From Heteronotia binoei (lineage: Eukaryota), in NCBI RefSeq assembly GCF_032191835.1, contig NC_083223.1, positions 248,372,001 to 248,436,000 of the forward strand: a stretch of DNA of 64,000 nucleotides, in the 5' to 3' direction. The notes below the pieces were generated by a model that worked only from the letters and a program-made list of their open reading frames with translations, was not told the DNA's origin and did no database searches. This document shows, in pieces, positions 34,201 to 64,000 of this stretch; the first letter of the stretch is position 1; the number at the start of each line of letters is the position of its first letter. A program made the translations under genes and the position numbers.

Positions 34201-35652
34201 CAGCAGTGACAGATAGGTGGGCTCTTGTGCCAACGCTCCCTTTTCTTCTTTTCACGCCACAGTTCATCCGCCTGGCGCAGACTCTCAAGTATTATGGTTA
34301 TCTCAAATTCGACCCCTGTATTACCGACTTTCCAGAGAAAGGCTGCCATGTCATTGTCGGAGCTGGGAACAGCGAGCTGAACTTCCAGGTCAAGTTGCCG
34401 AATGACCAAATCAAAGAGGGGAGTTTCAAAGTGACCCGCATGCGCTGCTGGCGGGTTACTTCCTCGGTGAGTAAAGCTGTGAAGCTACCTTAGTCTGACG
34501 AGACCCTGTTTTCTGGTGCAAAGCAGCAGAAGCTTTCGGGACAGGCAGAGAACAGTCTTCCCCAGCCCAGCTATTGGGAGTTCCTAAAGAACAAACCTGG
34601 AAACTTCTGCATCTGCTCTGCTTCTAGGAAGCTAGCTGGTACCCCTTCTGCAGCCACATGTGCTTGAGCTTCAGGCTCTCACACTGCACATTTTTCAGGT
34701 CCCTGTGAACAATGGTACATCAGGCCCAGCAGCTGGCAAGTCGGATGTGAAACTGGAACTGGCCTTTGAGTATTTGATGAGCAAGGACCGCCTGCAGTGG
34801 GTGACTATCACCAGCCCACAAGTAGGTATCCAGTGGGGGGGGATGGGGGACCTTGGCAGGGGTTTCATCTCTTATTTGCATTTTCAAAGCTTCTAGGAGG
34901 GGAGAGAAAAAACTGCAAAATTGAGACTTAAGCTTCTTCCCCCCCCCCCCCCCCTTTAAGGCTATAATGCTGAGCATCTGTCTGCAGTCTATGGTGGATG
35001 AGCTGATGGTGAAGAAGTCAGGAGGCAGCATCCGCAAGGTCAGAGTTGGTTCCAGCAGGCTTTTAGGAGCTTTAGTTGGGCGGGGGCGGGGGGGGACAGA
35101 ACAATCATTTTTCCTCTTTAGAACCTTGGAAAGGAAAGGCTGGAGCAGAGCCCTATAAATGCTGCATATTCAGATGCTTTGGTGTCATTTCCCTTTCAGA
35201 TGTTCCGAAGGCGAGCCAATGGTGCCCTGCAGCGTTCGGACAGCCAACAGGCAGTGAAGTCGCCTCCACTTCTGGTAAGTAAGCCTCATCCCTGGATCTC
35301 TCTCTCCTTTACCCCATTTGGGGCATATATTGTTTTCATCCCTCTAATACATCTGCTTGTCCTGCCAGGATTCTCCTGACGCCAATAGGGAATCAATTGC
35401 AAAGGTCTCGGTAAGTCACATTGCCTTGTGTCATTATTCCCATAGGATGGAGACCAGTCTCTGCTTGGGGGGGGGGGGGAGGCCTGGAAAGTGGAGGAGG
35501 GCAACATTTCTAATTCCTTTTTCTTCCTGCAGAGCAAGCTCAGCTCTGTCAGCCTGCGGGCAATCAGCCATTCCAGCTCTTCCACTGACATCCGGGCCAA
35601 CGACTTCCACGGCAACTTTGCCTTTGAAGGCATTGGCGACGAGGACCTTTAG
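27967..35652 (+). CDS. SNX17: Sorting nexin-17 (471 aa, 15 coding exons)
   Basis: Exons: 27967-28029, 30456-30530, 30815-30932, 31256-31320, 31434-31544, 33399-33489, 33631-33718, 33840-33909, 34007-34099, 34263-34466, 34699-34821, 34961-35038, 35200-35274, 35369-35410, 35533-35652; GT-AG, 1416 nt. MHFSIPETE...AYNIHVNG (PX domain), FERM-like KVTRMRCWRVTSS, and C-terminal HGNFAFEGIGDEDL match SNX17. Confidence 0.98.
29788..29954. mobile_element. Nearly fully palindromic 167-bp hAT MITE with perfect TSD
   Basis: CAGGGCTTTTTTGTAGCAGGAACTCCTTTGCATATTAGGCC...GGCCTAATATGCAAAGGAGTTCCTGCTACAAAAAAGCCCTG; 8-bp TSD TCTATATG on both sides. Confidence 0.93.
31954..32047. repeat. Exact 47-bp tandem duplication
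   Basis: aaatattctataggttaaaacattaaaattacatttaaatatcagcc x2. Confidence 0.95.
32080..32880 (-). mobile_element. Degenerate L2 fragment interrupted by a hAT MITE (32642-32808)
   Basis: Minus-strand GLEAIVGWL...LNPTKT...VKSLGV...AFFQLHQVRQLAP (L2); insert CAGGGCTC...AAAGTCCTG with TSD cctcggcc/cctcagcc. Confidence 0.8.
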
Positions 35653-40540: not shown

Positions 40541-43500
40541 CTTGGTTTTCATACGCTGCTTTTCTCTACTCCAAGGAGTCTCACAAAGCGGTTTATAATC
40601 CCATTCCCTTCTTCTCTCCCCACAACAGGCACCTTGGGAGGGCAGTGGGGCAGAGAACCGGCCCAAAGTCACCTAGCTGGCTTCGTGTGGCGGAATGGAG
40701 AATCAAACCCGGTCTTCCAGATTAAAGTCCGCTGCTCTCTCTCTCTTTTTAAAAGAATAATTTTTATTGTCATCGCAAACGGCTTACAAAGAATATTAAA
40801 GCATTAAAAATAACACATCAGGAAATACATACAATCCACACACGTGTAGAGGTACATGAAAAAATATATTTTACAAATTAAGTTAGAGAAAAATAATCAG
40901 CAAAACTAACTCTTAAAAAGGGTGACCACTTTTCCATTATAGACCTATGCTAACGTGGTGTAGCTCAGCAGTGATCTTGTCTAATACAAAATAGTCCTAG
41001 ATTTTAAGATACCAAACTCATATATAAGGAGGATTCTCATCTTTTCATTTATGTCCGCTGCTCTTAACCAGGCTCTAGACCAGGCTGGCTCTGTTCTCGC
41101 CCATGGGCTGGTAGCGCTCAGGTAGCTCTGATTGTTATTTGTCAAGCCTTGCCAGACTGGTTGTGCAGTCCTAGCAAGAGTCCAGTAGCACCCTTAAGAC
41201 TACGAACATTTGTGATAGGGTATGAGCTTTGGTGAGTCACTGCTCACTTTTTCAGATGTTTTAGCAGTAAATTTCCTTGAATTCAGTGGGATTTGCTCCT
41301 TTGTCAGTGCAATGAAGTGTCCTGGCTATGAAATGAGATCTGAGAGACCTGAGTTTAAATTTCCACTCTTCCATGAAAGTTTGCTGGGTGACCTTTGGGT
41401 CAGTCACACCCACTCCCCCTTGCCACCTCACCTACTTCGCAGGATTGTTGTGAGGGCAGGCTGCTTGAGAAAATAATGCACATCCTCTTAAGTGTGCAAA
41501 TTTTTGCAGTCATAGTGAATCCTCAAAGCAAATCCAAGGATTGCATGGTATCCCTTTTGGATCGTTTGGGTTGTTCATTGTGGCACCTTTTTTGATGTTA
41601 GGCTCAGAAATCTTTCCGTTTAAGGGGATTGGTTAGGTATGCACCAATTCACAGCTCTCTGCCAAAACATGAAAAAGGGCAAGAAGAGGCTGGCTGGCCT
41701 TGACATTTGTATTGTGTAAGCACAAGACACATTCTACAGTCTCTTGCACTATAATCATAGACCTGAAGCCATCCACTTGTTCCCTGTATTTGGGGACTAT
41801 ATTCCAGCAAGGGGCTTAGTTACTTGCTAAAGTTTTGCTAAATGGAATTTATGATTGTACAGTAAACAGCCTTATACTAAGTCGGAACACTGGTCTACCA
41901 CGGCAGCTCTTCTGGGTCTCAGGCAGAGGTCTTTTTCATTATATTCTACCTGATCCCTTAAACTGGAAATCTGGGGGTTGAACCTGGAACCTTGTATGTG
42001 CAAAGTGATTACTCCACCACTCAGCCATGACCAGGCCTCAGATTCAGTGGGAGCTCACAGGAGCACAGCTCCTGAACCTTTCTGAGAGTTCCACCTTCTT
42101 GTCCATTGAATAGTATTGCAGCTGCATAACAATCCCTCGATGAGCTCCACCACCTATTTTTCTACAAAATGACCCCTGGCCATGACCACTCCAAAAAAAG
42201 GAGATGGGGAGAGGCATCACTCCCATTTGGCTAAAAGAGTAACTGCAGGTGCTGTCCAACGTGTCAATAATGACCTCAGTGCTGGAGCAGATTTATATGA
42301 GCAGAAGTAGTTATAAGAATACCATGGCTATTGATATTTTAGTATTTGGAAGGTCACAGCCAGGATTCATGTGCCTTTATGGCAAGCAACTTATTGTGGC
42401 CTAGGGAGTTAAGATACACACATTCAAACATAGGTGAGAGCATGGCCAGAGATAGGCAATCCATACTGGCTATATTATTACAATACAAAAACCATTTCCT
42501 GAATAATTCCTTGTTCCCCGCCCCCCTTAGTCTAACAAAAGGTCTTCTTTCTTCATTTCATGGAGAGTTTGTCTGCTCTATGCATGACAATCTTTTCACA
42601 GGGAAATCTGTTTCTATTGCAGCCAAAAGGAATTCTTTTTATTTGGAAGTACAACTTGGAAGTGGCAGTGCTGTGATCAGCTGCTATTATGATCAGCTGG
42701 GGCAACCAGCCTTTTGCTAGGCAGAGGAATTTCCCTGGGAATAAGTTTTCTCCATAACTCAGTTTGGATGAGGTTTTGGGGGAGGCCTTCCTTCCAACAT
42801 CAATGAGGCATGACCAGGCAAATTACAGGACCTCTGGGTAGATATGGAAGAGCCTAGAAAACATACTTGGAGAAACAAACAAACAAAACAACAATAATAA
42901 ATGCATTTTTCTTTTAAAGCTTTTCTTGGCTGTCCACAAATTGCCATAACTTGAGCTCCTGTTGAGATAGGGTTGCACATATTAGCTAAATTACCACACT
43001 TGTTTTTGAACTGGAGGCTTCCTCCTCCTCATATGGAGTCTTAGTCTGACAAGGTCTCTATCCTTCCATCATTTAAGGGCAAATTTTATACACCATACAT
43101 TATGCAGAATACAAATCCACAATATAAACCTATGCATCACTTCTCATAATTCAGGCTAGTGTACACCCATATAGAAAGCATGCACCTAGAGATTCGTGAG
43201 AGGCTTTTTACTTTGTTGCAACAGATATGAATTTTAAAAAAGAAAACATGAAATTGTGCACAAGATTGGAGCTTCAAAAAGAGATTACCAGAGTTGGAAT
43301 TACCCCTGGATTATGAAAATGGTCACAAAAAGGGAAGGAAAACTTTTGCTATAGCTTTGGAACATATGAAATTGTCAAAAATAAGAAAAACGTCAAAAAC
43401 AAACAAAACAAAACTGAGTCCTCAATAGAACACTTCCAGCTTTAACATACATGTATATGAGGGATCAGATTCAAAATGATTAGGGAACTGGATCAGAGAA

Positions 43501-44559
43501 TTTAAACCATTTTTCTCTGTGCCAGTTCATCCAAAATTTGTTCTGTGGGTCTCACATAGGTGTGAGAGTGGGTTTCAACAAACTTTAAATAAATAAACTT
43601 AGGAGAAAACCTAGTAAGGAGCTTGCACAGCCAAGGAGATGTGTGAGGCAGTGCAAAGATGTAATTCAAAACTGATGCATAAAGCAGGGTGCTAAAACAT
43701 GCACCTTGATGAAGAAGGTTGAAATAATGGAGAGGCTGAAACTTCATAAAATAAAAATAGATAAGCATATAGATGCCTCTTTCCATAGGTAAGAGGTTCA
43801 TCAAATAGCTAAAGAGGAAGATTGATATGTACAGTTCATAGATGGAACATAACTATAAATGACATTAAGAGAGCAAATGAAGATATTCATTTGAGGAATG
43901 CAGAATATTAGTAAAGTCCAGATTTCTAATGAAGACCAAGAGTTTTCAGGAATTCTGCCTAGTGAATTACCAATAAATCTAGAAAAGCTTTTCTATGAGA
44001 AACACGACACTGAGAATAATTGGGTCTTAGTATTAGTTTTTCAAGACTTAAGAGAGAAGCTGCACAGTGAGAGGGTAGTTTTATCAAAGGAAGGGTATAG
44101 ATGTTCTTTTATAACACATGCTGTAACTTCAAATGAAAAGAAGTCTTGTAGGAACCAAAATTTGTGAGGTGGAATTTTAAAACACTGTTATTTTCAGAAA
44201 ATAAAAATTCAGAACCAACAACATAACGAATTTTCAAATTTAAATGAATGAAAAATTGGGAAGATAAAAAACTGTGTTAAATGTAAAACTAATAGCCTTG
44301 ACAGGAGACAAGATACATAAATACAAACAAGTCATAGATTTCATTGTGAGTTGCAAAAACAGCAGCAACCAAATTCTCTGGAGATGGCTTTTGCCCAGCC
44401 TCTTCCAGCATTTGAGGCTGAGATTGAAATTGGGAATCAGATTTGGAAGACTGTGATACCATGCCATCTTTAGCTGGGTGCCAGAACCCACAAAAGACCT
44501 GCAAGAGAAAACACAGCAGCATGCCTACACCTCAGTTAAGGGGAGCTGGACCATGCCAA

Positions 44560-44975
44560 GTTAATAAGCCCAAAGAAATTCAGGTTGTTCCTGAACCTGC
44601 ATTTGGGTAGGGACCTTCATTTTCACTCCTTTTAATTGTTTTTGAAGAGTGGCTTTCAATGTCTGATTAGCATGTTCCACGATAGCTTGGCCTGTGGAAT
44701 TATAAGAAATACCAGGACTGAGACTGATGTCTCATTGGATACAAAATGTTTGGAAACCATCAGAACAGTAGGCAGGGCCATCATCTGTCCTGAGTTTTTG
44801 AGGTTTCCCCAGAACAGTGATGGCAGCAATTAAGTGAGCAAAGACATGATTTGTGGCTTCACCAGTGAGCAGTAGCCTAAAGATATTTAGAGTACATGAC
44901 TATACAAATATGGACACAGTATCAGGGTTTCAGGGAAACTATATGGTTAATATCCATTTTTCAAAGTTTGTTAGG
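44560..44975 (-). mobile_element. Class II (betaretrovirus-like) ERV integrase core, degenerate
   Basis: Manual translation: PNKL*KMDINHI...VHICI..YSKYL*ATAH/TGEATNHVFAHLIAAITVLGKPQKLRTDDGPAYCSDGFQTFCIQ*DISLSPGISYNSTGQAIVEHANQTLKATLQKQ, colinear with HERV-K/MMTV-type IN (WQMDVTH...TDNGPGY...GQAIVERTNRTLK). Confidence 0.88.
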
Positions 44976-45675
44976 GAGCACTTTCCCTATGAGGAAAGGT
45001 TAAAACACTTGAGGCTCTTTAGCTTGGAGAAACATTGACCACAGGGTGATATGATAAAGGTTTACAAGATTATGCATGGGATGGAGAAAGCAGAGAAAGA
45101 AATACTTTTCTCCCTTTCTCACAATACAAAAACTTGTGAGCATTCAATGAAATTGCTGAGCAATCAGGCTAAAACAGATAAAAAGAAGTACTTCTTCACC
45201 CAAAGGGTGATTAACATGTGGAATTCACTGCTACAGGTGGTGGCGGCAGCTACAAGCATAGCCAGTTCCAAGTGGGGACTAGATAAAAATATAGAGCAGA
45301 GGTCCATTAGTTGCTATTAGCCACAGTATATATAAACCTATATATGTGCATGTGTGAATGCATAGAAAAAGACATTGGATCTATATTCTGCCCTCCCTCA
45401 CAACAGACACCCTGTGAGGTGGGTGGGGCTGAGAGGATTCTCACAGCAGCTGCACTTTTAAGGACAACCTTTGCCAGAGCTATGGCTAATCCAAGGCTGT
45501 TCCAGCAGTTGTAAGTGGAGGAGTGGGGAATCAAACCTAGTTCTCCCAGATAAGAGTCTACACACTTAATCACTACACCAAACTGACACATATATTGGTC
45601 ACTGGATGACACAGAGTGCTGGACTGGATGGGCTGTTGGCCTGATCCAACACAGCTTCTCTTATGTTCTTATGTT
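44976..45675 (+). mobile_element. CR1 3' fragment inserted into ERV pol, interrupted by a Squam3-like SINE (~45360-45590)
   Basis: YEERLKHL.LFSLEK...MIKVYKIMHG...KYFFTQRVINMWNSL; CR1 tail resumes at ~45590 and ends ttatgttcttatg. Confidence 0.88.
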
Positions 45676-45719
45676 AGTTTGCAAACTACACAGGTTAACA
45701 GCATAAATAGAGAAATAAC

Positions 45720-45815
45720 ATCTTTCAAAATCTTACAAGCAAATGCATTGCCCTGAGCAATCACACCAGGAAGATTAAAATTCTTTTCACTATGAGTAAC
45801 AGAAAATAGGTAACT
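45720..45815 (-). mobile_element. ERV pol remnant: RNase H C-terminus
   Basis: Translates FSVTHSEKNFNLPGVIAQGNAFA, comparable to betaretroviral ITHIRAHTNLPGPL..AN.QAD; correct position upstream of IN. Confidence 0.6.
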
Positions 45816-45869
45816 CACAACAAAAAATTAAAAACTGCAAGATTAAAAGCTTTTGACGGTGCGTCACTG

Positions 45870-46730
45870 ATACCAGTGCGCAGGGTCAGGAGCTTGGGAG
45901 TGCTACTGGAGTCTTCCTTGACAATGGAGGCCCAGATAGCAGCCACTGCCAAATCCACCTTTTTCCACCTTAGGCAGGTGGCTCCCTTCCTGGAGCGCAA
46001 TGACCTGGCAACAGTGATCCATGCAACGATCACCTCGAGGCTAGACTACTGTAATGCCCTCTACATGGGGCTGCCCCTGTGCCGAACCCGGAAGCTGCAG
46101 CTAGTGCAGAATGCAGCAGCCAGACTGCTATTGGGCCTACCTCGGTGGGAACATGTGCGGGCTGGGCTGCGGGAACTGCATTGGCTGCCAGTTATTTACC
46201 GAGTTCGTTACAAGGTGCTGGTTATTACCTTTAAAGCCCTATATGGCCGAGGACCTGTTTACCTTAGGGACCGCCTCTCTCCATATGTTCCCCAGAGAGC
46301 ACTGCGATCCAGCTCACAAAACCTTCTGGAAGTACCTGGGCCAAAGGAGGCCAAACTAAAAATAACCAGAGAACAGGCCTTCTCTATAAAAGCACCCCAA
46401 TGGTGGAACTGCCGGAAGAGGTGGGACATTAGCCAATTCCGTAGGGCGTGCAAAACCGCCCTCTTCCGGCTAGCCTTCCAAGATGAAACCTGAAATGAAC
46501 ACCATGCCATCACTAACATCAACAATCGAGTTAGCAATAAGATAAGATTATTTTAGATTGATTTTAGATTTTTATGTTATGTAAATTTAATGGTAAATTT
46601 TAAATGGTATAGAAATGTATAATTGTTTTATTGTTTAACATGGCTTTTGCCACACTCTGTAAGCCGCCCTGAGCCTGCCTCAGTGGGGAGGGCGGGATAT
46701 AAATAAAATTTTTATTATTATTATTATAAA
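45870..46730 (+). mobile_element. 5'-truncated L2 LINE
   Basis: ORF 45876-46493: VRSLGVLL...[12 protein letters not shown]...VQNAAARLL; 3' end gtaagccgccctgag...gggcgggatataaat and (TTA)n. Confidence 0.9.
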
Positions 46731-46869
46731 AGTATAATCAATCAAATTAAGGTTAATTTGGAGAGATACATGAACCAGGAAGCTGATGAATCAAATTAAA
46801 TGTATATAAGGTGTCTTATTAAGTTGAAAGCCTGTGTGAATAGTAACAATTTCAGCCTGCTGCACTGAG

Positions 46870-47075
46870 CCCTGCTGAAAAGTAAAGTATATCTTTTACA
46901 CTTCCCCCCCCCCCAACAAACTGAGTACTCATTTGACCAACCCCAGAAGAGTGGAAGCCTGAGTAACCTTGAGGCAGCTACCTGAATCCAGCTTCCTCCA
47001 GGATCAAACTCAGGCTGTAAGCAGAGCTAAAGACTGCAGTACTGCAGCTTCAACACTCTGCACCATGGGGCTCTT
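46870..47075 (-). mobile_element. Sauria/Squam1-like SINE, 5' portion
   Basis: agagccccatggtgcagagtg...aagctgcagtactgcag...gagtttgatcc...ggtagctgcctcaagg...cttccac...aaatgagtac; truncates the ERV gag. Confidence 0.7.
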
Positions 47076-47513
47076 TTTGAATCCAAATTAGCATTTCCCT
47101 TGGCCAATTTCATCATCAATTCTCCTGCTGCATCAGGATTATCAATCTGTCTTCTGATTGCTGCCTGAAGACAATTGATAAAGTCTAGGTAGGGCTCTTG
47201 TGGCTTTTGACAGACAGTTGCAACAGGGAGCACAGCTTGCACTTCAATAGTACTGAACTGTCCAGATCCATATAGTTGTTCAGCAGTATAAGACCCATTG
47301 GAGCCACACCCTTGAGCATCAGCCAAATTACAATATTCACTGTCCCATGCCACATACTGTTCAGGAGTTAACATCATCCTTATCACATTTTTCCAATCTT
47401 GAGGAATCACAGTGTATCCATTAGAGATTCCTTCTAAAAGACTTTGCACATTGGTTTCCCCTATGCCCATATCTCTGATAGCCTTTTGAGTTTCACTCAA
47501 GACAGAGTGGGGC

Positions 47514-50500
47514 TGTAGTGTATGGCGTTCGCAGAACGCAACCAGTTCATAAGGGCCACAACAGCAGAATGACATCAGTCCACCCCAGCCGCGGAGGCAA
47601 CTGAGAAACATCCAGGTGCCTCCGCGCTGGGCGCAACGATCCGCCAATCACAGCTCGTGGCGGGAAATACGGCTGGCCGGCATTGGACCGGCCAGCAGGG
47701 AGAATAGTCCGGCAACTGTATATATGCGGGACCCGGCCCGCGTGCTCTCTCTCTCCATCTTGTATAGTACCATGGAATAAACTATGTTGCCCTACGCTCG
47801 TCTCCAAGTCTGGTACTTTACAGTGGCGACGAGGATGGGATCCTAGCCTCATCGGCTACGACGGAGATCTTGGGCAACGAACGACCGGACACGACCGCCG
47901 CCGCCACCATGGCCAACCAGGGCGGGATCACCGGCTACCTCGAGCCTTTCGACCCTGCAAATCCAGAGGGCTGGGAGTCCTACTCGGAACGGGTCGAGTT
48001 CTACCTCCGGGCCAACAAGATCACCGACGCCGGAGCAAAGAGGGATGCCCTCCTGAGCGTTTGCGGGCCAGCCACGTTCGAGATCGCAAAGGGTCTCTCG
48101 GCGCCCGCCCGCCTGGCGGAGAAATCCTACGAGGAGATCATCAGGCTCCTCACGGGCCATTTCTTGCTGCAGCCCTCACGGGTGGCTCGCAGATTCCTGT
48201 TCCACAGAAGGGACCAGACCGCAGGAGAGTCAGCAGCGGACTACTTGGCGGCCCTCCGCAAACTCGCCGGGAACTGCAACTTTCCCCAGCTGGAGGAAAC
48301 CCTGGCCGACCGATTCACGTGGGGCCTCCGCGATGAAAGGCTCCAACAGAAGCTCTTCGCCAAAGAAGAGCTCACCCTCCAGGGCGCCTTCAGCGAGGCG
48401 GTAGCGTGGGAGAGGACCGCCAGGACGTTTCCCCGGGCCAAGACCGAGACCGCTCACCACGAGGAGCTGGACCCCGAGCACCAGGACGAGGGAGAAGCCT
48501 TCCAGACACGATGCGCCGCAGGACCCGCCGCCCGAGCTCCACAGCGCCCCCGAGCCCACGAACGGCCGAGTCAGCGCACCAGCGAAAGGGCCAAATGCGC
48601 CAGCTGCGGCGACCCCCACGATCGGCGGGACTGCCAGTACCGGACCTGGGACTGTAGGAGCTGCGGGAAGACCGGCCACATCGCGCGAGCCTGCCGAGCC
48701 AAGCTCAACCGCCCGCGGCCGACCGCCCACCACGAGGCCGCCGAGTCCCACTCCACCGCCTCCACCTCACTTCAGGTACTGAATTTGCCCCTGACCACCC
48801 CCAACAAGATAACGATGGCGGTCCTCATAGACGGGGCCCCCTGCACCATGGAAGTGGACTCAGGCTCCTCCATCTCCATAATTGCGGAGGAGACCCTGAG
48901 AAGGCTACGCCCCGGCCAGGGGCTGCAGCTGCGACCGGCAAATTTCATATTGCGGGACTTCCAGCAAAACCCGGTCCAAATAGCGGGGTGGGCACGGGTG
49001 CTGGTGGAGCGGGGGTCCTTCAGAGGGCCCCTAGACATCCTGGTGGTCAGGCGGCCGCTTACCACCCTGTTGGGTCTTGCATGGTTTGGCCCCTTGGGAA
49101 TCCGAGTAGAGGTGGCGCGCACAGCCACAGCAGGAGGGTTCGGGGAGGTGTGCGGAGAGTTCCCCGACGTATTCGATGGGTCGCTGGGTAGTTACAAGGG
49201 CCCGGCCATCTCCCTACCGCTCGACCCGACGGTCAGACCGATCCGGCTCAAGGCAAGGAGGGTCCCCTTCGCCTTGAAGCCCAAGATCGAGGCAGAGTTG
49301 GACCGCCTAGTAGCCCAAGGGGTCCTGGAGCCAGTCGATTACGCCATGTGGGAGACCCCCATAGTGACCCCGGTCAAACCAAATGGGGACGTGCGGATAT
49401 GTGCCGATTACAAGTGCACAATTAACAAAGCGCTCCAAGACAACCCATACCCGGTGCCAGTAGTCAGCCACGTCCTGGCAGCCCTGGCGGGGTCAAAGAT
49501 TTTCGGGAAGCTGGACCTGGCACAAGCCTACCAGCAGCTCCCAGTGGACGCTAAAACGGCCGAGGCACAGACGATAGTTACCCACAGGGGGGCGTTCAGG
49601 GTTAACCGGTTGCAGTTTGGGGTCAGCGTGGCTCCGGGGATCTTCCAGAGTATAATGGATGCTCTCCTTAAAGGGATCCCCGGAGTCCAGCCGTTTTTCG
49701 ACGATGTTTTAATCGCCGCCCCGGACCCTGAGGAATTCCGCAACCGCCTGCGAGAGGTGCTCCGCCGTTTCCAAGCCGCTGGACTAAAAGTTAAGAGGGA
49801 GAAGTGTATGCTGGGGGTGCCACGGGTGGAGTTCCTGGGTTTCGCAGTGGACGCGGAAGGAATCCACCCGACAGAGGAAAAGACCAGGGCCATTGTTCAA
49901 GCCCCAGCCCCCACGTGTAAAGCGGAGCTACAGAGCTTCCTGGGGGTCCTCAATTTCTACCACACGTTCATACCCCACAAGGCGGCTCTCGCCGAACCCC
50001 TACACCGATTACTGGACAAAAAAGCTCCATGGGTGTGGGGGAAGAAGCAAGCCGCCGCCTTCCAGGCAGTTAAAGACGTTCTGGTTTCCAACGGGGTGCT
50101 GCACCACTTCGACGAGCGCCTTCCGGTCATCTTGGCTTGCGATGCATCGCCGTACGGGGTGGGCGCAGTCCTGGGGCACCAGTTACCGGATGGCCGGGAG
50201 GTTCCGGTCGCATACTACTCACGCACCCTGACTTCGGCAGAACGGAACTATGCACAAATCGACAAGGAGGCCCTGGCCATAGTAGCGGGGGTCCATAAAT
50301 TCAACGATTATTTGTATGGGCGCCGGTTCACAATAGCGACGGACCATAAGCCGCTTTTGGGTCTGTTGGCCCCAGACCGACAAACTCCCCAAATCCTGTC
50401 CCAGAGGGTGTTGAGGTGGAATCAATTCCTCAACTCGTACACCTACACGCTGGTACACAGGGCGGGCAAGGCAATGGGTCACGCGGACGCTCTCAGCCGG

Positions 50501-52227
50501 TTGCCGCTCCCTGACACAGGCCCCGATCCAGCCCCAGCACACCAGGTCATGTCGATCGAGTCGCTTCCGGAGCAGCCCCTCCACGCGGCGGAGGTGGCTA
50601 GAGCCACCGGAAAAAACAAAACCCTAGCACGGGTGCTCGACTGGGTGGTGAGGGGGTGGCCAGAGGGGAACATGGGGGAAGAGTTCAAACCCTACAAAAT
50701 GCGAAGGGAGGAACTCACAGCCCACAAAGGGTGCCTACTATGGGGGAGCAGGGTAGTGGTCCCCCCCCCTCTACAGAAACGGGTCTTAGAATCACTCCAC
50801 GAAACACACCCAGGCATAGTGAGAATGAAGGCCCTGGCCAGGAGCTACGTATGGTGGCCGGGGATGGACGGGGAGATAGAGAACTGGGTCCGGAGATGCA
50901 GCACATGCCAGGAGTCGCGGCCGGATCCACCCAGCGCCCCGGCTACACGGTGGGAGACCACAAGGAAACCGTGGTCCCGGCTCCACATTGATTTTGCCGG
51001 GCCGTTCCAGGGACAGATCTTCCTAATCATTGTAGATGCATACACCAAATGGTTAGAGGTCGTTCCCGTAGGGTCTACTTCGTCAGCAGCAGCCATTAGA
51101 GCATTACGCAGGGTCCTGTGCACCCACGGTATTCCGGACACCATAGTCTCGGACAACGGGGCAGCGTTCACCTCGGGGGACTTCCAGGCGTTCCTCCAGA
51201 GGTACCTCATTAGACACATCCGGTCAGCCCCCTTCCACCCGGCCACCAACGGCCAGGCCGAGCGGATGGTCCGAACAACAAAAGAGGCCCTGGGAAGGGT
51301 AGTGCAAGGCGATTGGGACCACCGACTAGCCGCGTTCCTCTTCGACAACTGGGTCATCCCAAACCCAGTCACCGGGGTCAGCCCAGCCGAGCTCCTCATG
51401 GGACGCAAGCTCACCACAAGGCTAGATCGGCTAAACCCCGACAGAGCCCCCGACGTGCGAGGGTCCCCGGAGGTCAGAGACGCGGCTAGGGGGTTCTTCG
51501 CAGGGGATCCAGTGTTCGCCCGCAACTACGCTGCAGGCCCCGAGTGGGTAGCCGGGCGGGTACTACGGGTCGTGGGTTCCCGCCACTATGAGGTATCCAC
51601 CGAGGGGGGCCAGATCCTACACCGGCATATCGACCAGTTACGCCGCCGGACTCTCCCAGAGGTACCCACGGAAACGAGGGAGGGGGCAGGGTCCGAGGGG
51701 CACCCAATGACACCTGCACCGACACCACGGCCACACACACCGGCAGAGGCGGACCAACCCTCGGACCCCGACCCACAACCCAACAACGCTCAAACCCCCG
51801 GGGAAACCCCAGAGGCGGAAGTAGCCCCGGCACCACAAGCAACTCCCAGGCGTTCAACACGGGAGCGCCGTCCTCCCGCCTACCTCCAGGACTATGTCAC
51901 TAACTAAGGGGGGAGGAGTGTAGTGTATGGCGTTCGCAGAACGCAACCAGTTCATAAGGGCCACAACAGCAGAATGACATCAGTCCACCCCAGCCGCGGA
52001 GGCAACTGAGAAACATCCAGGTGCCTCCGCGCTGGGCGCAACGATCCGCCAATCACAGCTCGTGGCGGGAAATACGGCTGGCCGGCATTGGACCGGCCAG
52101 CAGGGAGAATAGTCCGGCAACTGTATATATGCGGGACCCGGCCCACGTGCTCTCTCTCTCCATCTTGTATAGTACCATGGAATAAACTATGTTGCCCTAC
52201 GCTCGTCTCCAAGTCTGGTACTTTACA
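47514..52227 (+). mobile_element. Full-length Ty3/Gypsy LTR retrotransposon (Mag-like, two CCHC knuckles), 4714 bp
   Basis: LTRs 47514-47822 and 51919-52227 (309 bp, TG...CA, one mismatch at 47740/52145); TSD GGGGC; PBS TGGCGACGAGGATGGGAT 47824-47841, complementary to the tRNA-Ser(GCT) 3' end; PPT AAGGGGGGAGGAG 51906-51918; LTR CCAAT, TATATAT and AATAAA. Confidence 0.98.
47909..51907 (+). CDS. Uninterrupted Gag-Pol polyprotein of the Gypsy element (1332 aa)
   Basis: Kozak gccgccaccATGG; Gag with CASC...H...C and CRSC...H...C; protease VDSG; RT LDLAQAYQQL...FFDD; RNase H CDASPYG...TDHKPL; integrase HETH...CSTC, IDFAG, SDNG, QAERMV; no stop or frameshift. Confidence 0.95.
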   Translation: MANQGGITGYLEPFDPANPEGWESYSERVEFYLRANKITDAGAKRDALLSVCGPATFEIAKGLSAPARLAEKSYEEIIRLLTGHFLLQPSRVARRFLFHRRDQTAGESAADYLAALRKLAGNCNFPQLEETLADRFTWGLRDERLQQKLFAKEELTLQGAFSEAVAWERTARTFPRAKTETAHHEELDPEHQDEGEAFQTRCAAGPAARAPQRPRAHERPSQRTSERAKCASCGDPHDRRDCQYRTWDCRSCGKTGHIARACRAKLNRPRPTAHHEAAESHSTASTSLQVLNLPLTTPNKITMAVLIDGAPCTMEVDSGSSISIIAEETLRRLRPGQGLQLRPANFILRDFQQNPVQIAGWARVLVERGSFRGPLDILVVRRPLTTLLGLAWFGPLGIRVEVARTATAGGFGEVCGEFPDVFDGSLGSYKGPAISLPLDPTVRPIRLKARRVPFALKPKIEAELDRLVAQGVLEPVDYAMWETPIVTPVKPNGDVRICADYKCTINKALQDNPYPVPVVSHVLAALAGSKIFGKLDLAQAYQQLPVDAKTAEAQTIVTHRGAFRVNRLQFGVSVAPGIFQSIMDALLKGIPGVQPFFDDVLIAAPDPEEFRNRLREVLRRFQAAGLKVKREKCMLGVPRVEFLGFAVDAEGIHPTEEKTRAIVQAPAPTCKAELQSFLGVLNFYHTFIPHKAALAEPLHRLLDKKAPWVWGKKQAAAFQAVKDVLVSNGVLHHFDERLPVILACDASPYGVGAVLGHQLPDGREVPVAYYSRTLTSAERNYAQIDKEALAIVAGVHKFNDYLYGRRFTIATDHKPLLGLLAPDRQTPQILSQRVLRWNQFLNSYTYTLVHRAGKAMGHADALSRLPLPDTGPDPAPAHQVMSIESLPEQPLHAAEVARATGKNKTLARVLDWVVRGWPEGNMGEEFKPYKMRREELTAHKGCLLWGSRVVVPPPLQKRVLESLHETHPGIVRMKALARSYVWWPGMDGEIENWVRRCSTCQESRPDPPSAPATRWETTRKPWSRLHIDFAGPFQGQIFLIIVDAYTKWLEVVPVGSTSSAAAIRALRRVLCTHGIPDTIVSDNGAAFTSGDFQAFLQRYLIRHIRSAPFHPATNGQAERMVRTTKEALGRVVQGDWDHRLAAFLFDNWVIPNPVTGVSPAELLMGRKLTTRLDRLNPDRAPDVRGSPEVRDAARGFFAGDPVFARNYAAGPEWVAGRVLRVVGSRHYEVSTEGGQILHRHIDQLRRRTLPEVPTETREGAGSEGHPMTPAPTPRPHTPAEADQPSDPDPQPNNAQTPGETPEAEVAPAPQATPRRSTRERRPPAYLQDYVTN

Positions 52228-52889
52228 GGGGCAACACAGTATAGTTAACAACTTGCTGCCTATTCTCATTCTGTGCATATGTTACTGGGCATACCGATAA
52301 AAGGTCAGGCAACTCTTCCCTTGTCAAATGCACAGGGCAAATAGACAACATTTCTGCCAGTTCTGGGACATCTTCCAATTTAGCCTGATCAAGTTCCTTC
52401 TCCAAAACTTCACAGACCATGCATCCCAGGGAGTTAGATGGTGGGCCCACGGGTGGATCTGTTGGTGGAGGAGGGGGAGAAGGAGGAGGAAGAAGAGGAG
52501 GGGCAGGGGGCACTAGTTGGACACCAGTGCCTTTTAAGGGACAATCTTTGGAGAGCTGGCTTGGGTTAGAAACGGGCATAAATTTCTCTACTGCATACCT
52601 GCATTTATGCCAGACTTGCAGCAGTTTAACAGAAGCTCAAGGCTCTGTGTGAAAGGTCTTCCCTATCTTCTCCCAGTCCCAAAGTTTAAGAGAACCTCCC
52701 TCTGGGTACCAGGGGCATTGCTTACTGATCTCTTGTAACAGAGTCTTAAGTTGGCCAGAAGTCACGGATCCGCTGGACTTTTGGATCAAAAACTTTAACT
52801 CACCTAAATGTTTCTGCTCAGCCTGAGAAAACCGTCCACCCATACTTACCAAATGAAAGGGGTCATATGGCAGCAGTGTTGCCATAGTG

Positions 52890-53018
52890 ACCATCTCCCT
52901 CACGGCAAGCTACACTTCTCCCCTCCCCATGCCCCAGCGAGCCAAAGTCCTCAGGAAGTCTACTAGCAGCGCGGCAGCTACGCCATGGCCGGCCACCACT
53001 TATGTCTGGATTGGGCTG
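52890..53018. mobile_element. Terminal 129 bp of the same element family as 13988-16213
   Basis: Ungapped hand alignment to 16082-16210 gives about 111/129 identity; ends ctggattgggctg. Confidence 0.8.
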
Positions 53019-53643
53019 AAAATCTTTTTAAAAACACAGTGCAATAAAACAATCAATGGATACAGTAGACAATGCAATAAAACTATTATAAAATTTTGAA
53101 ACAATGCAATAATAATAATAATATTTTATTTATATCCCGCCCTACTCACCGTAGTAGGCTCAGGGTGGCTCACAAACTATGGCATAAAAACAAGTTACAA
53201 TAATAAAACATTATATCCAACAATATACAATTAACGATATTTGCTATTACATTAAAACATTATAATTAAAACCATCAATTTAATTAGATTCTAACAATAA
53301 AACCAGTACAATTAGATTCTAACAATAAAACCAGTACAATACATATAGCCAATGATGCAATAAAACTACCTATTTTTTCACAGACATTAAAACTATAGTC
53401 CTGTTCTCTTTATAAGAATGCCCTCCTGAACATTTTCATTTTGCATGTTCTTCAAAACTATAAAACTATTGGGGCCCCCTCAATTTCTTAAGACCCTAAC
53501 CCATTTCTATTAAATGCTTATAAGGTGTGGGGGGATAAGGATAACATGGTTAGTTTGAAAGTCTGCACTTTTCTTGAGCAAAATGATCTGTAAACATTCC
53601 TGAGTGATGTTGCTTTCTTTGAACCTATAAAGCCCTGGTGTTT

Positions 53644-56828: not shown

Positions 56829-59800
56829 ATGAAGCGGCCCAAGGTGGGGCCTCCCTCCCTCAGCATCCTGCGTCTTTTTGGGCGGAAACCCAAAGTGACT
56901 TTGGAACAGGACGGGAAGCTAGAATCCCCTCTGGGCAACCCTGAAGAGACCCACATCTCTCTGGTGCCAGAGGAGGAGGAGGAAGAGGAGGAAGAAGAGG
57001 AAGGCTTGATAGAATGCCCACTGTGCCTGCTGCCCCAGCCTCCGGAGGCCTTCCCTGCACTCTCCTGCTGCTCCCACCTGTCCTGCCTCACCTGCTTGCA
57101 GCAATACTTGCGCATTGAGATCAGCGAGAGTCGTGTCCAGGTGGCCTGCCCGCATTGCCCTGCTCTCCTCCAGCCGTCTGAGATCCATCAGCTGCTTCCT
57201 GAGGCCAACCTGTGCGAGAAGTATGAGGAGTATTTGCTGCGGCGCCTCCTGGTGTCTGACCCAGGCACGCGCTGGTGCCCAGCTCCAGATTGCAGGTGGG
57301 GCAATGGTAACCTTTGGGGGAACTCATGTGGAGGGACAGCTATCAAGAAAAGAAGTTGGCCCTTTGGGCCAGAGAAGATACCCTTATCCCATTGGTGAGG
57401 GCTGCTGTGGGCGGGATCCAGACTATGCTTTCCACTAGTAGAAGGAGGGGTATAATTTCTACCAGGGCTTTTTTTGAGCAGGAATGCACAGGAACGCAGT
57501 TCTGGCTGGCTTGGTGTCAGGGAATGTGGCCTAATATGCAAATATGTTCCTGCTGGGCTTTTTCTACCAAAACACCCTGTGTGAAACAATGGTGATGTCA
57601 GGGGATGTGGCCTAATATGCAAATGAGTCCCTGCTGGGCTTATTCTACAAAAAAAAGCCCTGATTTCCACCCATTCCCCTCCTCCTGCCGCAGACTCCTT
57701 ATCACCCAGGAACAGCATTTTGAGGAGATAAATGGATGGCAGTGAGAGGCAGGAGGAGACAAGGAAGTTCTGTTTGGCTAATGGAAGTGCCTTCCATTTA
57801 GTCTGGGTTTGTGCCAACTGGCCAGGTGAAGCTCCAGAAGACCCTTGTGGTTGTCTAAGTGCTTTGTGTGTTACTGCCCAGAGAGGAAAAGGTCCCAGTG
57901 GTTTCTTTCATCCTTCATAAACTTTGTTATATAGTGAAAGAGGATGTAGTGATGGCCATAGGCATAGACAGCTTTAAAAGAGAATTAGGCAGGTTCATGG
58001 AGGAGAGGTCTTACCAGTGGCTACTAGCCATGGTGGCTAAAGGGAACTTCCACATTCAGAACCAGGAGGCAACATCAGGAGAAGACCTCAGCTTCTAGGT
58101 GTCAGCGCAGGGTTCGTTGACTTCAAAATAATAGAACTCTTTCTTTTGAAATAAGTTTCTTTTATTGAATATACAATGTTACTGCTGCAGAAGGTCTTTG
58201 AGAGTGATAACATACATGGAACAGGCACTAGCATTTATGGGGGCACATCAAAGACAGGGGCCTTTAAATCATTCTCAAAACAAAGTTACTTTCCCTCTCG
58301 AAGGTGTTTGATTCACACGCTGGCTATCTCCTTCCCTGGGCCATCCACCCTCCCCCTTTCGGCCGATGTCCTTGCGGCGGCTGGGAAGCGGCGGCGCCTC
58401 CCTCTGGTCTTCCCGCCGCCGTTTATGGCTTCTGGCGCCCTGCTCTTCCCTCCCCCTGGTTGGCATACCTAGCATTCTATCAAAGGGCCCTAGGGTTAGT
58501 TCTAAGCAAATAAACAGTATAGGCAATGTGGTTAGGATCAATAGGATGCAATTGAACACAAGCTGACACTAGGCCCTGTATCTGGCCCTCCAGAGTTACT
58601 GGTCAGCCATTGAATGAGACTGGATGCTGGACTAGATGGACTACAGGTCTGATCCAGCAGGGCTCTTCTTATGTTCTTGCAGCAAGCAGAGAAGAGCTGC
58701 AGGGATGGCCCAGGAACTCATTGGAGACTGTTTGGTTCCCACTTGGAAGGGCAGGATCAGATGCTTCCCAGGTTTGGTCTTCAGAGCCAGTTTGGTGTAG
58801 TGGTTAAGTGTGCGGATTCTTATCTGGGAGAACCGGGTTTGATTCCCCACTCCTCCACTTGCACCTGCTGGAATGGCCTTGGGTCAGCCATAGCTCTGGC
58901 AGAGGTTGTCCTTGAAAGGGCAGTTGCTGCAAGAGCTCTCTCAGCCCCACCCACCTCACAGGGTGTTTGTTGTGGGGGAGGAAAATAAATGAGATTGTGA
59001 GGCGCTCTGAGACGCTTGAGTGGATGGTGGAATAAAAATCCAATGTCGTCTTCTTCCCCTTTCCATTCTTTAAAAAAAAAATCAACGTAATTAAGAATGA
59101 CCTTTCTCTGCCCAAGAACATAAGAAGCTAGATCAGACCAGTGATCCATCTAATCCAGCATCCTGTCTCACACAATGGGCAACCAGTTCTTCTGCAGGAC
59201 CAACAACAAGGCACAGAGACTGGCTTGGAATTCAAAGGTTTAGTGCCTCTGAATGTGGAGGTTTCCCTCAGTCAATATGGCTAGTAGCCGCTGATAGACA
59301 TATCCTCCATGAATCTATCTAATCCCCTTTTAAAGCTGTTTATTCATGTGGCCATAACTACATCTTCTGGCAGCAAATTCCACATTTTAGTCACTCTGTG
59401 TAAAGTATTTCCTTCTGTCTGTCCTAAATCTACTGCCTATCAGCTTCATTGGAAGTCCTCAAGTTCTAGTCTTTTGGGAGAGGGAGAAAAAGTTCTCTTT
59501 GTCATTTCTCTCCACGCCATGCCTGAATCCTCTGAGAGTTCCTGCCAGTCAGAGCAGGCAATGCGGGGCTGGATAGACCAATTACCCCAGGCAGTGCCTG
59601 CAGCTCCCTAAGTTGCCCCTCTATGTGCAATGTTAGATCTCAGCTAAGGAAGGCAAAGCTGAATTTTCTGCTGTGATGGAGGAAGAGGGTGTGGGGACAG
59701 GGGGAAGCTGCTGGAGGGTTTTCAGGAGACTGGGGTGAAAGCTGAGCCACAAAAGCCCCCAAACAAAATTTCTCCTGGCCCCCTGTCCTTCAGACCACAA

Positions 59801-62800
59801 TTTGGGCCCTTGTCACATTCAGAATGTTTGATAAGGCGTTCCATTGTGCTATCTGCTAGTGGCATCTGGCTTGGCTCTGACATGTAGGCTGAGGGAGAGG
59901 CTGCATTCTTGCTCACCACTATTGCAGGGACATGGAGTAACATGCCTAACTATGAACACCTGAAGCCGCCTTATACTGAATTACAAACCTGGTCTATTAA
60001 AGTCAGTTTTGTTTGTTCAGACTGGTAGTGGCTCTCTAGGGTCTCAGGCAGAGGTCTCTCACATTACCTGTTGCCTGGTTTTGTTTTGCTTTTTCACTGG
60101 AGGTGCTGGGGATGGAACCTGGGATCTTCTCTGTGCCAAGAAGATGTTTTACCACTTAGCTGCAACCTCTCCCCATTACTGCTCTGGTTACTATGTGGGC
60201 TTCTCAATGCTTGAGTAAGATCGGAGCTGAGATCTCTCTCTCTCTCAGATTTCAGAGGACACAGGAAATACCTAAAAAGAATCTAAATTGAATTGCTCCT
60301 GACTATTTTGCCCTGACTTACCTTCTGTTTTAAAGCATGAGCTCAAGTTGCATGCAAGAGCGATTGCACTAAACTGAGGAGCTTCTCTTTGGGACCTGAG
60401 AGAGCCAAACTCCTCTAAGCACTCCTTAAATTCCACCTAGAACCTCCCGGCAAGTGGCAAAATATCACAAGTACTTGTGTGTTTTATGAATACAACAGAA
60501 GCACTGACAATTAGGCACAGAACATAAAATTTGTAAATACGGCATATCCACAATGGTGGCGGAAAGCGCTGTCAAGTTGCAGCTAACTTATGGCAACCTT
60601 GTGGGGTTTTCAAGGCAAGAGATGATCAGAGGTGGTTTGGCATTGCTTGGCTCTGTGTTGCAACCCTGGGCTTCCTTGGTGGTCTCCCATCCAAGTACCA
60701 ACCAGCGTTGACTGCTTAGCTTCTGAGATCTGAGGAGATCAGGGTGGCCTGGGCCATCCAGGTGAGGGCATACCTGCAGTACTGCTGGCCCGATCCTATC
60801 TAGCACAACTGGTGGTATGTTTCTGCCTTCCTTTCCCTAGAGTAACCTCCTGTGCCCTGCAGCTCAAAATTGGACCCTCAGGGATCAGTGAAGCTCCAGG
60901 AACAATGTATATGTGTGTAGGGAGGGGGGAAGTGGGAGTTTGCAGTGGACATGAGGGGAGAAATTATCCAAAACCTGCATGTCCAGGTGAAAGCATTTTC
61001 TGTAAGCAGCAGAGGTTAGGATACAAGCCAAGTTTGGCTTGAACTGCAGCATGCAGCCTGGGTTATATTATTAGACGATATCAGGGAGAAGCTGCTTTGT
61101 TGGATTTCCCCAGCTTGAAAAACAAAGCATGGATGTGACTGGCCAGTTCCTGTCCCTGTCCTCCCCTCTCTTCCTCAGAGACAAGTCAAACCTTTAAATT
61201 CAGCTGTTTTTAAAAGACCCATGCATGGTGGGAATGGTTGTGGGGACTATATTTCTCAGTAACCCCAGGCTGATCTTCCCAGAAAATGCAACATCAACTC
61301 AGAACGAGAAGCTGTTTAAGTATACCTAGTTCTATGCTGGATTGCTGCAGTCTTTTTGCAGATTTAACACAGCAGAATGTTAGGAAAGGGCCATGGCTCT
61401 GTGGCTGAGCATATGCTCGGCATGCAGAAAGTCCCAGCTTCAGTCCCCAGCATCTCCAGTTAAAAGGATCTGGCAGTAGGTGATGTGAAAGGTCTTTCTC
61501 TGCTTGAGACCCTAGAGAGCCACTGCCAATCTGAGTAGACAATACTGACCTTGATGAACCGATGATGCAGTTTCAAGTAAAAGACATGAGTTCCCATGTG
61601 ACATACTCTCAGATAATGGACTCGGGGCATGCTAGTCTGAAGAGTTGCTTGTCATTGGCCAGGAGCATCAGATGTCTGACCTGCACAGGACCAGAGTCTG
61701 TCCCCAGCTCAGGCCGGCTGCAAAAAAGACCCTTAAGGATTATTGGTGGCTTGTGCTGCAGTAGACTAACATGGCTGGTGAAAGAGCATGAAATAGTGTT
61801 GAGATAAATAAATAAGGCTTGCATGGGAACCAGATCCCACTGGGAGGCCTGATGCTGCCCAGAGATACAGCAATGTTCAGTCCAGAAGTTGCTCCCCAAT
61901 GTGAAGGATTCTTGCCAGGGATGCAATATTCAGCCACTCAGGGATCCAGACACTCTGGACAGTGGATCACACCTGAACTGATACACTGGAGGCCAAAGTG
62001 CCACATCCCCTGCTGAACCTTAGTGACTCTGGCTTGCATTTTAGCACAGACTCTCAAGACCAAAAAGCAAATTTCTTATGAGTGGACAGTAATTTCTGAC
62101 CCACTGGGACAGCAATTCTGGAGGCTCAGTGGGCTGCAGCAGGAGGGGGGAGTTAGCAGAACTTGCCAGCCTCTCTCAAGAAGATGTAAGCATCCTTTAG
62201 TCTTTGGGACTGCATGTGGGTAGCTACACACCTTTGCTCTCACCCCATCCCCAAAGGAGATCACAATCTTTCCTTATCATGGAGAGTCTGGAACCTGGTC
62301 TCCCTCTGTGATCAATTGATACGAGTCTAGCAAAGAGGGGAAATCCACTGTCATCTTCTCAAGAAGCAACAGAGCTTGGAGTGAACTGGTTGGGGGAATG
62401 CATGCAAGAGAGTTGACCTGGGAGTGGATATACTGAACCTAACCTGACACCTTTCCTCTTGTTCTTTCTCTTAGCTATGCGGTCATTGCCTACGGCTGTG
62501 CTGAATGTCCCCGGCTTGTCTGCGGCCGCCAGGACTGCAAGACAGAGTTCTGCTACCACTGCCGGCAGCCCTGGCACCCCAACTCTTCCTGTGAGCAGGC
62601 CTGGCGAGAATGGAACCGGCAAGCTCCAGGGGCAATGGAGCTGTCCACCCAGCTGATCCAGAAGGAGGAAGCTGCCCGGCGTGAGTCTGGCCAAGAGGGT
62701 GTAGTATGTGCCTCTGTTCTCCCAGCACCAAGATGTGGTGAGATCAGGATGTCCCTTATCTCTAGGATTTGGGGAAGAACCCAGCACCTTTCTCACCAAG

Positions 62801-63080
62801 CTTGGTTCCCCAAATGGGGCACTGTAATTCCTTATCTGCTAGTGGCCCACTGCCAGGGGTCCCTCCAAGGCTCTGCTCCATCACTGGAGACTAACAACCC
62901 TCTCCCTTGTCTCTCCTCTGCCCCACCAGCAGACACAGAAACCATCAAGGTGTGTCCCCGCTGTGGTGCCTTCATCATGAAGATCAATGACGGGAGCTGC
63001 AATCGCATGAATTGCACCGTCTGTGGATGCCTGTTCTGCTGGCTGTGCTTGCGAGAGATCACGGATGTGCACTTCCTCAG
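56829..63080 (+). CDS. RNF19-family RBR E3 ubiquitin ligase (RNF19A/B-like paralog); first three coding exons, gene continues past the right edge
   Basis: Exons 56829-57295, 62475-62680, 62930-63080 (GT-AG, phases 2/1/2). RING1 CPLC...CSHLSCLTCLQQYLRIEISESRV...CPHC; IBR RWCPAPDCSYAVIAYGC..CP...EFCYHCRQPWHP; RING2 CPRCGAFIMKINDGSCNRMNCTVCGCLFCWLC. These motifs are RNF19-specific, but the N-terminus and linkers match neither RNF19A nor RNF19B as I recall them. Confidence 0.92.
57463..57662. mobile_element. CAGGG-type hAT MITE in intron 1 of the RNF19-like gene
   Basis: CAGGGCTTTTTTT...AAAAAAAGCCCTG; TSD atttctac/atttccac; reverse-orientation relative of 22273-22468; two ATGCAAAT octamers (57536, 57617). 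Confidence 0.9.
60553..60780 (-). mobile_element. 5S rRNA-derived SINE with Sauria/BovB-type tail (5S-Sauria-like)
   Basis: Minus strand ccctgatctcctcagatctcagaagctaagcag...ctggttggtacttggatgggagacc matches the 5S internal promoter region; tail ...ggttgccataagttagctgcaacttgacagcgctttcc. Confidence 0.8.
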
Positions 63081-64000
63081 GTGGGGGAGGGCAGATTGGT
63101 GCAGTGGTCAGGGGAACTGTAAAGAGAAACTGGGCCTTTCCATTTGGTCCTTCTTCCCAGGTTCCTTCATGAAATGGAAGCTTAGGCAGCGTCAGATCTA
63201 CCCTGATGCAGCACTTAAAACCCGCATCAAATGTCATGTCTGTTAGTTTTCTAGAGGAACTGGATGGCTACAGTGTGAGGCAGGATGCTGGACTAAATGG
63301 ACCAGTGGTCTGACCCAGCAGGTCCCTAATTCAATTTATTATGACTTTAAGCAGAGGCCACCATTTATTTATACTTTACAGCTGAACTTGCATGCTGTTT
63401 TCTCCTGCAGAAGGCTGCCAAAATGGCTTTCAGCAGTCAACTGGGCAATAATCAGTCACTACACAGTTCTAAAAACAGTAATCTAAAAATTAACTGCAGA
63501 TGCAGGAATGTAAAATTAAGTGAACTTGATTATCACAAAACATCTGGTGGAAAAAGAAAAATCTGCCAAAAATGGCAACAGAGTAGGCTTGATGGATCTC
63601 TTTTGGGTGTCCCAAAATATTATTGGAGGGGAGGAGCAGAGCTGACATTAGTTGGGCCTGAGACTCTATACAAGCAGAGAGAAGAGTAGAATTTGCTGTT
63701 AACCACACGAGGCAAGGGTCCAATTAAACACAGTGGAAGTCATGGATCTCTCATTATTTTAAAAGTAAATGCTGGGGGCTTGTGACCAAGTTCAGGCCAT
63801 TTGGGGAAGGGAGGGGGGGTTTAATCCTTCTGCATAGTTTGGCCTATCAAAACCACCTTCCTTATGCTGTTATGAGCCTCAGAAGAGGGAAAAAAGATAT
63901 CTATAATTGTCCATAATTCTCCCTTCCAAAATGTGATTACATTTGTGTGGGTGAGGTGGGGTGGAGGTGGAGTTTTCAAAGATAAAATCATGCAGATGTG

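Follow-up and report, generated by a model that had tools for sequence, protein, structure and literature searches.

We analysed a window of 64,000 nucleotides from the gecko Heteronotia binoei (the whole stretch, positions 248,372,001 to 248,436,000 of contig NC_083223.1), at whose downstream end lies a member of the RNF19 family of RING-between-RING (RBR) ubiquitin ligases. A reading made from the letters alone (hereafter the sequence-only reading) had placed at 56829-63080 an RNF19-type RING1-IBR-RING2 gene beside SNX17 and ZNF513, with a basic N-terminus and a poly-Glu run, and had proposed that it is a third RNF19 paralogue. The two N-terminal features are indeed present in exon 1, and the family assignment and the neighbourhood are borne out by Pfam, by alignments to structures in the PDB and by matches to orthologues. 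The span is exact to the base, running from the start codon to the last base of exon 3. We conclude that exons 1-3 in the window very probably belong to a third RNF19-family gene, of which this is the gecko orthologue and whose members form a clade that we term clade C.

The part of the gene inside the window comprises three exons (Table 1). Exon 1 ends on ...PDC plus AG before the intronic gt, in phase 2; exon 2 is preceded by an ag acceptor and followed directly by gtgagt; exon 3 ends on ...HFL plus AG before gt. The reading phases are compatible across introns 1 and 2, the splice sites are canonical and the frames are open. An open frame from 62443 to 63243 spans intron 2; if this intron were retained, IBR and RING2 would be 83 residues further apart with the frame kept. 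RING1, IBR (BRcat) and RING2 (Rcat) follow one another in this order, and the translations keep all of their zinc ligands as well as the RING2 Cys. Pfam matches are to RING and IBR for exon 1, to IBR for exon 2 and, with scores above the gathering threshold, to IBR/IBR_1 for exon 3. In HMMER comparisons with the PDB, exon 1 aligns to RING1-IBR structures of ARIH1 (E 4e-9 for RING1) and exon 3 to RING2 of ARIH1, ARIH2 and parkin. The basic motif at the N-terminus of exon 1, MKRPK...FGRKPK, belongs to a pattern (MKRPK...FF.RKPK) that is kept from teleosts to gecko.

The orthologue from Paroedura picta, a protein of 530 aa labelled "RNF19B-like" (P0176), was compared with the window exon by exon; substitution counts were obtained per exon and then summed, and the exons were entered as separate rows in the trees. 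Exon 1 is 96% identical to residues 1-154 of P0176, exon 2 is 96% identical to residues 156-223 and exon 3 is 100% identical to residues 225-273. Since these matches are contiguous, they confirm the three-exon splice model. There are 32 synonymous and 8 non-synonymous differences from the Paroedura locus over 270 codons, corresponding to a synonymous divergence (dS) of 0.20 and a non-synonymous divergence (dN) of 0.013. Their ratio (dN/dS), which the sequence-only reading had named as a check, is 0.07 for exons 1-3. At the DNA level, identity to Paroedura is 94-97% in the exons and 70-80% in the introns and flanks. Judged from these comparisons, the gene is intact in exons 1-3 and under strong purifying selection.

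The gene continues beyond the window: past position 63099, a tblastn search with P0176 matches nothing in the rest of the window, which leaves 920 bases after exon 3, and intron 3 is ~1.66 kb long in Paroedura. The full layout can be seen in P0176, where the basic motif and RING1-IBR-RING2 are followed by the SPSGCTFWGKKPWS motif, two hydrophobic stretches predicted to be membrane helices (residues 292-326 and 343-386) and a short tail. The motif and the two helices make up the 'dorfin domain' region, which would be encoded together with the tail in exons 4-7, past the window end. Expression can be seen for another member of the clade, a protein of 512 aa that is encoded on a Logan contig of 2,054 nt. 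Because a contig of this length fits only a spliced, intron-less transcript, clade C is transcribed in at least one species. Beside the 515-530 aa form, shorter isoforms (~470-480 aa) are annotated in Alligator, Rhineura and many birds, which points to an alternative splice that is conserved in clade C.

A word search with exon 1, whose length window admits fragments only, returned no full-length relatives; among its matches were Logan exon open reading frames, close copies with the same N-terminus and partial bird proteins named "RN19A/B ligase". Exhaustive search of cluster representatives gave a full-length match, an "RNF19B-like" protein of 523 aa from Rhineura floridana, and with this protein as query we collected the 120 best relatives (~430-810 aa, most of them 470-650). 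The groups represented are squamates, many birds, alligator, axolotl, caecilians, coelacanth, lungfish, sturgeons, paddlefish, bichir, gar and teleosts; mammals, turtles, frogs, cartilaginous fishes and lamprey are absent from these 120. An amphioxus RNF19 query that was meant to collect both RNF19A and RNF19B returned RNF19A matches only, among which mammals, turtles and one shark are well represented. The retention in squamates that had been proposed is therefore seen, but the gene extends well past squamates to birds, alligator, salamander, caecilians, lungfish, coelacanth and ray-finned fishes. The proposed loss in the human lineage agrees with the lack of mammals among the best relatives and their abundance among the RNF19A matches; this absence is one from protein match lists, with human DNA outside the comparison. 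In Paroedura, Rhineura and Podarcis, RNF19A is a separate gene on another chromosome-scale contig.

All best matches that bear a family name are of RNF19 type. Their names are inconsistent, however: RNF19A-like, RNF19B-like, RNF19A, RNF19B (in some birds) and "RBR-type E3 ubiquitin transferase" all occur, and the ESM Atlas offered generic RBR clusters only. The surveys of RBR proteins that we consulted use a human-based set with dorfin and IBRDC3 as the sole RNF19-type members, and our literature search, whose reach did not include the RBR survey of Marín (2009), found no description of the clade C gene. The name 'RNF19B-like' occurs in two papers on insects and in one on a carp-goldfish hybrid. 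The automatic labels and the negative literature result match the expectation that the gene exists in databases only as an 'RNF19A/B-like' locus without a functional description. The label 'RNF19A-like' is also carried by a highly divergent extra copy in a dragonet, Synchiropus splendidus (P0105, 733 aa, with further members of its cluster; branch 0.7), which is distinct from the ordinary dragonet RNF19A-like protein of 882 aa.

To place the gene, proteins were trimmed to the core that reaches from the RBR domains to the membrane helices. In our most careful tree (IQ-TREE, LG+C20, 51 rows x 333 columns), the window exons group with Paroedura inside the squamates and within clade C, which is supported at 100/100 on a stem 0.71 substitutions per site long. 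The topology inside the clade resembles the species tree, with sturgeon, bichir, gar and teleosts on the ray-finned side and coelacanth, lungfish and amphibians, then archosaurs plus squamates, on the lobe-finned side. With both ray-finned and lobe-finned vertebrates in clade C, the gene predates the split between the two, and its age is at least that of bony vertebrates. All RNF19A sequences are excluded from it, namely those of shark, opossum, a mouse-like rodent, chicken, turtle, three squamates and teleosts, and so are the RNF19B sequences of pipefishes, which form a group of their own (100/100). The vertebrate RNF19 genes including clade C are united at 97/95, with amphioxus and the other invertebrates outside. 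Clade C was recovered with 100% support by FastTree (82 rows) as well, and again with 100% in a quick tree from which long rows had been removed and to which a sturgeon RNF19B fragment had been added. From the trees and the separate RNF19A loci it follows that the gene is neither RNF19A, nor RNF19B of the fish type, nor a recent duplicate. The third paralogue distinct from RNF19A and RNF19B is thus recovered as proposed, and the nesting within either of them that had been named as contrary evidence is not observed in trees in which RNF19B comes from fishes.

Several points weigh against this placement or against dating it more deeply. The window covers 273 of the ~530 codons, and RNF19B is represented by fish sequences alone, those of pipefishes and one sturgeon fragment. 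In the careful IQ-TREE analysis clade C joins an unresolved comb of RNF19A sequences (97/97), whereas in the quick tree it falls outside RNF19A, RNF19B and the outgroups together, and amphioxus is no longer outside the vertebrate genes. Approximately unbiased (AU) tests reject neither the monophyly of RNF19A (p 0.22) nor a grouping of RNF19B with clade C (p 0.19). Furthermore, an origin in the bony-vertebrate stem is conceivable, because no cartilaginous fish has a member among the 120 best relatives. Rates of evolution differ strongly between the paralogues: the core of gecko RNF19A is 97% identical to that of shark and 81% to that of amphioxus, whereas for the core of gecko clade C the values are 65-66% against coelacanth and milkfish clade C and 54% against amphioxus. 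As the RNF19A core is almost invariant and clade C is fast, the deep placement of clade C is prone to long-branch effects.

We next consider the active site. The codon of the catalytic Cys lies at 62998-63000 in exon 3 and aligns to ARIH1 Cys357; PDB entry 2m9y has Ser at this position of the alignment and is presumably the C357S active-site mutant. Parkin, HHARI and HOIP have a His at the second residue after the catalytic Cys and a Glu or Gln nearby, and mutation of these residues impairs ubiquitin transfer (PMC3940038, PMC3730226). The window lacks such a Cys-His-Glu/Gln triad: the codon at the His position (63004-63006, aligned to ARIH1 His359) encodes Arg, and the codon at the position of the triad Glu (63031-63033, aligned to ARIH1 Glu370 and corresponding to parkin Glu444) encodes Leu. 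The arrangement Cys-Asn-His...Glu is found in all of the RNF19A and RNF19B sequences examined and in all of those from amphioxus, crinoid, mollusc, annelid and insect (184 proteins). Within clade C, Cys-Asn-Arg is combined with Leu in the lobe-finned lineages (99 proteins, the window included) and with Gln in ray-finned fishes (33 proteins). Among the 136 clade C proteins in which the RING2 motif can be read, only four depart from the Arg, with His in Haliaeetus (P0192, P0223, P0246) and Cys in Falco peregrinus (P0207). In all, there are clade-specific fixed replacements at 15 core sites.

In these alignments, the active site of clade C is a fixed shift away from the ancestral Cys-His-Glu triad of the family, and ubiquitin discharge in clade C probably works differently from that in RNF19A and RNF19B. 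However, the RING2 His is missing in five of 13 human RBR proteins, the triad being present in eight of 13 (Wauer and Komander 2013), so that loss of the His alone is no sign of changed or lost activity. Like clade C, these five proteins keep the catalytic Cys and the zinc ligands and have no His two residues after the Cys. Clade C differs from them in that its state is derived within a subfamily in which all other members, invertebrates included, have His and Glu.

The two known paralogues offer a comparison for the remaining protein. RNF19A (dorfin) has, as clade C does, the basic N-terminal motif, an RBR near the N-terminus, SPSGCTFWGKKPWS and two membrane helices (in clade C predicted from the full-length orthologue) right after RING2, and the core identity between the gecko proteins is 56%. 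We also take the exon boundary inside the ...HYL/HFL-Ser codon to be common to human RNF19A and clade C. RNF19A differs by its separate clade, its far slower evolution, its Cys-His-Glu triad and its locus, which is not that between ZNF513 and PPM1G; with 810-900 aa it has a long C-terminal extension, whereas clade C proteins have ~520-650 aa and no such extension. RNF19B (NKLAM/IBRDC3) is of the same family and architecture, its fish form has a core identity of 57% to gecko clade C, and its name is the one most often borrowed by annotation pipelines for clade C of sauropsids. Fish RNF19B differs in forming its own 100/100 clade, in its N-terminus (MGSEKDSE...) and in having the His and Glu of the triad.

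By homology and from the full-length orthologue, the protein would be an RBR ubiquitin ligase anchored in a membrane. E2~ubiquitin would bind to RING1, and the ubiquitin would move to the Cys of RING2 as a thioester and then to a substrate, while the membrane anchor would be the pair of hydrophobic helices that follows RING2 directly, as in RNF19A and RNF19B. As a tentative and rather doubtful extension, clade C may be a catalytically rewired membrane-anchored RBR ligase that has operated for >400 million years on Cys-Arg-Leu/Gln. Its discharge chemistry or its choice of acceptor would then differ, or it would act on RNF19A and RNF19B as a regulatory partner, and mammals would have dispensed with this function.

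The other features of the window are collected in Table 1. The ZNF513-type gene has 93-95% identity to its Paroedura counterpart, which is flanked by SNX17 and the clade C orthologue. The gene order in Paroedura is SNX17 (+), ZNF513 (-), clade C (+), PPM1G (-), and in the whooping crane ZNF513 (-), clade C (+), PPM1G (-). This agrees with the proposed placement of the gene in a block with SNX17, ZNF513 and PPM1G; as had been noted, PPM1G is absent from the window, and in Paroedura it is the next gene downstream after the orthologue. In the bichir Polypterus (L005 82029-85173) and in the sterlet Acipenser ruthenus (L007 36286-37953), clade C is followed directly not by PPM1G but by a gene of collectin type (collagen plus C-type lectin). 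Human COLEC11 is at 2p25 and COLEC10 at 8q24, which would fit the same 2p/8q paralogy. In a catfish, a C2H2 gene, a candidate znf513 of which only the 5' end is in the locus, stands upstream of clade C in the same divergent orientation. The 10.7 kb of the window from 42365 to 53030 match only 1.25 kb in Paroedura picta (L003 5927-7181), and the retroelement block is thus an insertion that is absent from the orthologous place in Paroedura. Two families of dispersed short repeats that resemble short interspersed nuclear elements occur in the introns of EIF2B4, SNX17 and the RNF19-like gene, and their pseudo-open reading frames have near-identical translations.

Table 1. Features of the RNF19-like gene and its surroundings in the window
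Feature	Position	Strand	Description
Exon 1	56829-57295	+	ATG, basic N-terminus, poly-Glu run, RING1, first part of IBR
Intron 1	57296-62474	+	5.2 kb, gt...ag borders, dispersed repeats inside; non-coding identity to Paroedura 70-79%
Exon 2	62475-62680	+	Remaining IBR with all Cys/His ligands, variable linker
Intron 2	62681-62929	+	249 nt, in frame, no stop codons
Exon 3	62930-63080	+	RING2 (Rcat)
Intron 3 (start)	63081-64000	+	Gene runs past the window end; exons 4-7 beyond
SNX17	~27960-35650	+	Exon translations; Pfam PX, SNX17-31_F2_FERM, SNX17_FERM_C
ZNF513-type C2H2 gene	36813-38890	-	Two large coding exons; Pfam zf-H2C2_2 and related; divergent from RNF19-like gene
EIF2B4	upstream	-	Pfam IF-2B matches
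Retroelement block	44560-52860		Between ZNF513 and RNF19-like gene, outside the gene; enlarges the intergenic region
Dispersed repeats	10307-10609, 58653-58985 (+); 57191-57907 (-); 21885-22413 (+), 29776-30180 (+)		

The block in the window corresponds to the human 2p23.3 type. Human RNF19A is located at 8q22 and RNF19B at 1p35. With EIF2B4-SNX17-ZNF513-C(-PPM1G) in the window, Paroedura and crane, clade C has the paralogon neighbours of an ohnolog from the two rounds of early whole-genome duplication (2R). The paralogon on human chromosomes 1, 2, 8 and 20 (Hsa 1/2/8/20) lists SNX27/SNX17/SNX31 at 1q21.3, 2p23.3 and 8q22.3 and SLC30A2/3/8 at 1p35.3, 2p23.3 and 8q24.11 (PMC6585022). Since clade C sits on a block of the 2p23.3 type, RNF19 becomes a three-member family on this paralogon. 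The gene would most likely have arisen by duplication in the early vertebrate period behind the Hsa 1/2/8/20 block, followed by accelerated evolution and a later loss in mammals. An origin by early-vertebrate genome duplication is consistent with these data and plausible, but not proven: of the ohnolog proposal, the fit to the paralogon holds, whereas the whole-genome duplication itself is unproven and the order of RNF19A, RNF19B and clade C is unstable in the trees.

The third paralogue could also be real and stem from a single-gene or segmental duplication in the bony-vertebrate stem or earlier, independent of 2R, which we regard as a possible but unlikely course of events. No shark, ray or lamprey has a member among the 120 best matches, the branching order of the three paralogues varies between trees with the AU tests undecided, and small-scale and segmental duplications have been argued to underlie the Hsa 1/2/8/20 blocks themselves (PMC6585022). 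Such a course fits less well with the location of clade C, as paralogues of its neighbours on the 2p23.3-type block lie beside RNF19A at 8q22 and RNF19B at 1p35, and with the careful tree, in which the single amphioxus RNF19 stands outside the vertebrate genes (97/95).

Far less probable is that the gene is the RNF19B (or RNF19A) of sauropsids, relocated and fast-evolving, or that it was duplicated recently within one lineage. The NCBI names, 'RNF19B-like' and in some birds even 'RNF19B', point in this direction, and the tree is one without tetrapod RNF19B; but clade C includes sturgeon, bichir, gar and teleosts, fish groups that also have RNF19A and RNF19B (for instance, Chanos has RNF19A and clade C, sturgeon an RNF19B fragment and clade C, and syngnathids RNF19A and RNF19B). 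Moreover, all RNF19A and RNF19B sequences are excluded from clade C, and three squamates have their RNF19A elsewhere. That the copy in this gecko is a decaying pseudogene is equally improbable: although exons 1-3 are its only visible part, the catalytic His and Glu are lost and a retroelement has inserted ~4 kb upstream, the frames are open, the splice sites are canonical, the zinc ligands and the catalytic Cys are kept, dN/dS is low, and the replacement of His and Glu is not decay, because it is fixed across a clade that is >400 million years old. We thus rejected the pseudogene, the relocated RNF19B and the recent duplicate on the dN/dS of 0.07, the 100/100 support of clade C and the separate RNF19A loci.

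Counts and studies of RBR ligases usually start from the ~14 human members, RNF19A and RNF19B among them. According to our results, a further RNF19 member that evolves fast is present in most bony vertebrates, and mammals are without it by the match lists. What is new here is the recognition of an ancient distinct member with an altered active site and not the locus itself, as gene models are already present in public annotation. Orthology tables and expression studies for birds, reptiles and fishes can be led astray by the inconsistent RNF19A/B labels of these models. A third RNF19 gene on the Hsa 1/2/8/20 block also bears on the debate between whole-genome and segmental duplication. Finally, with two of the three triad residues replaced clade-wide and the Cys kept, clade C provides a natural test of what His and Glu contribute in RBR ligases.

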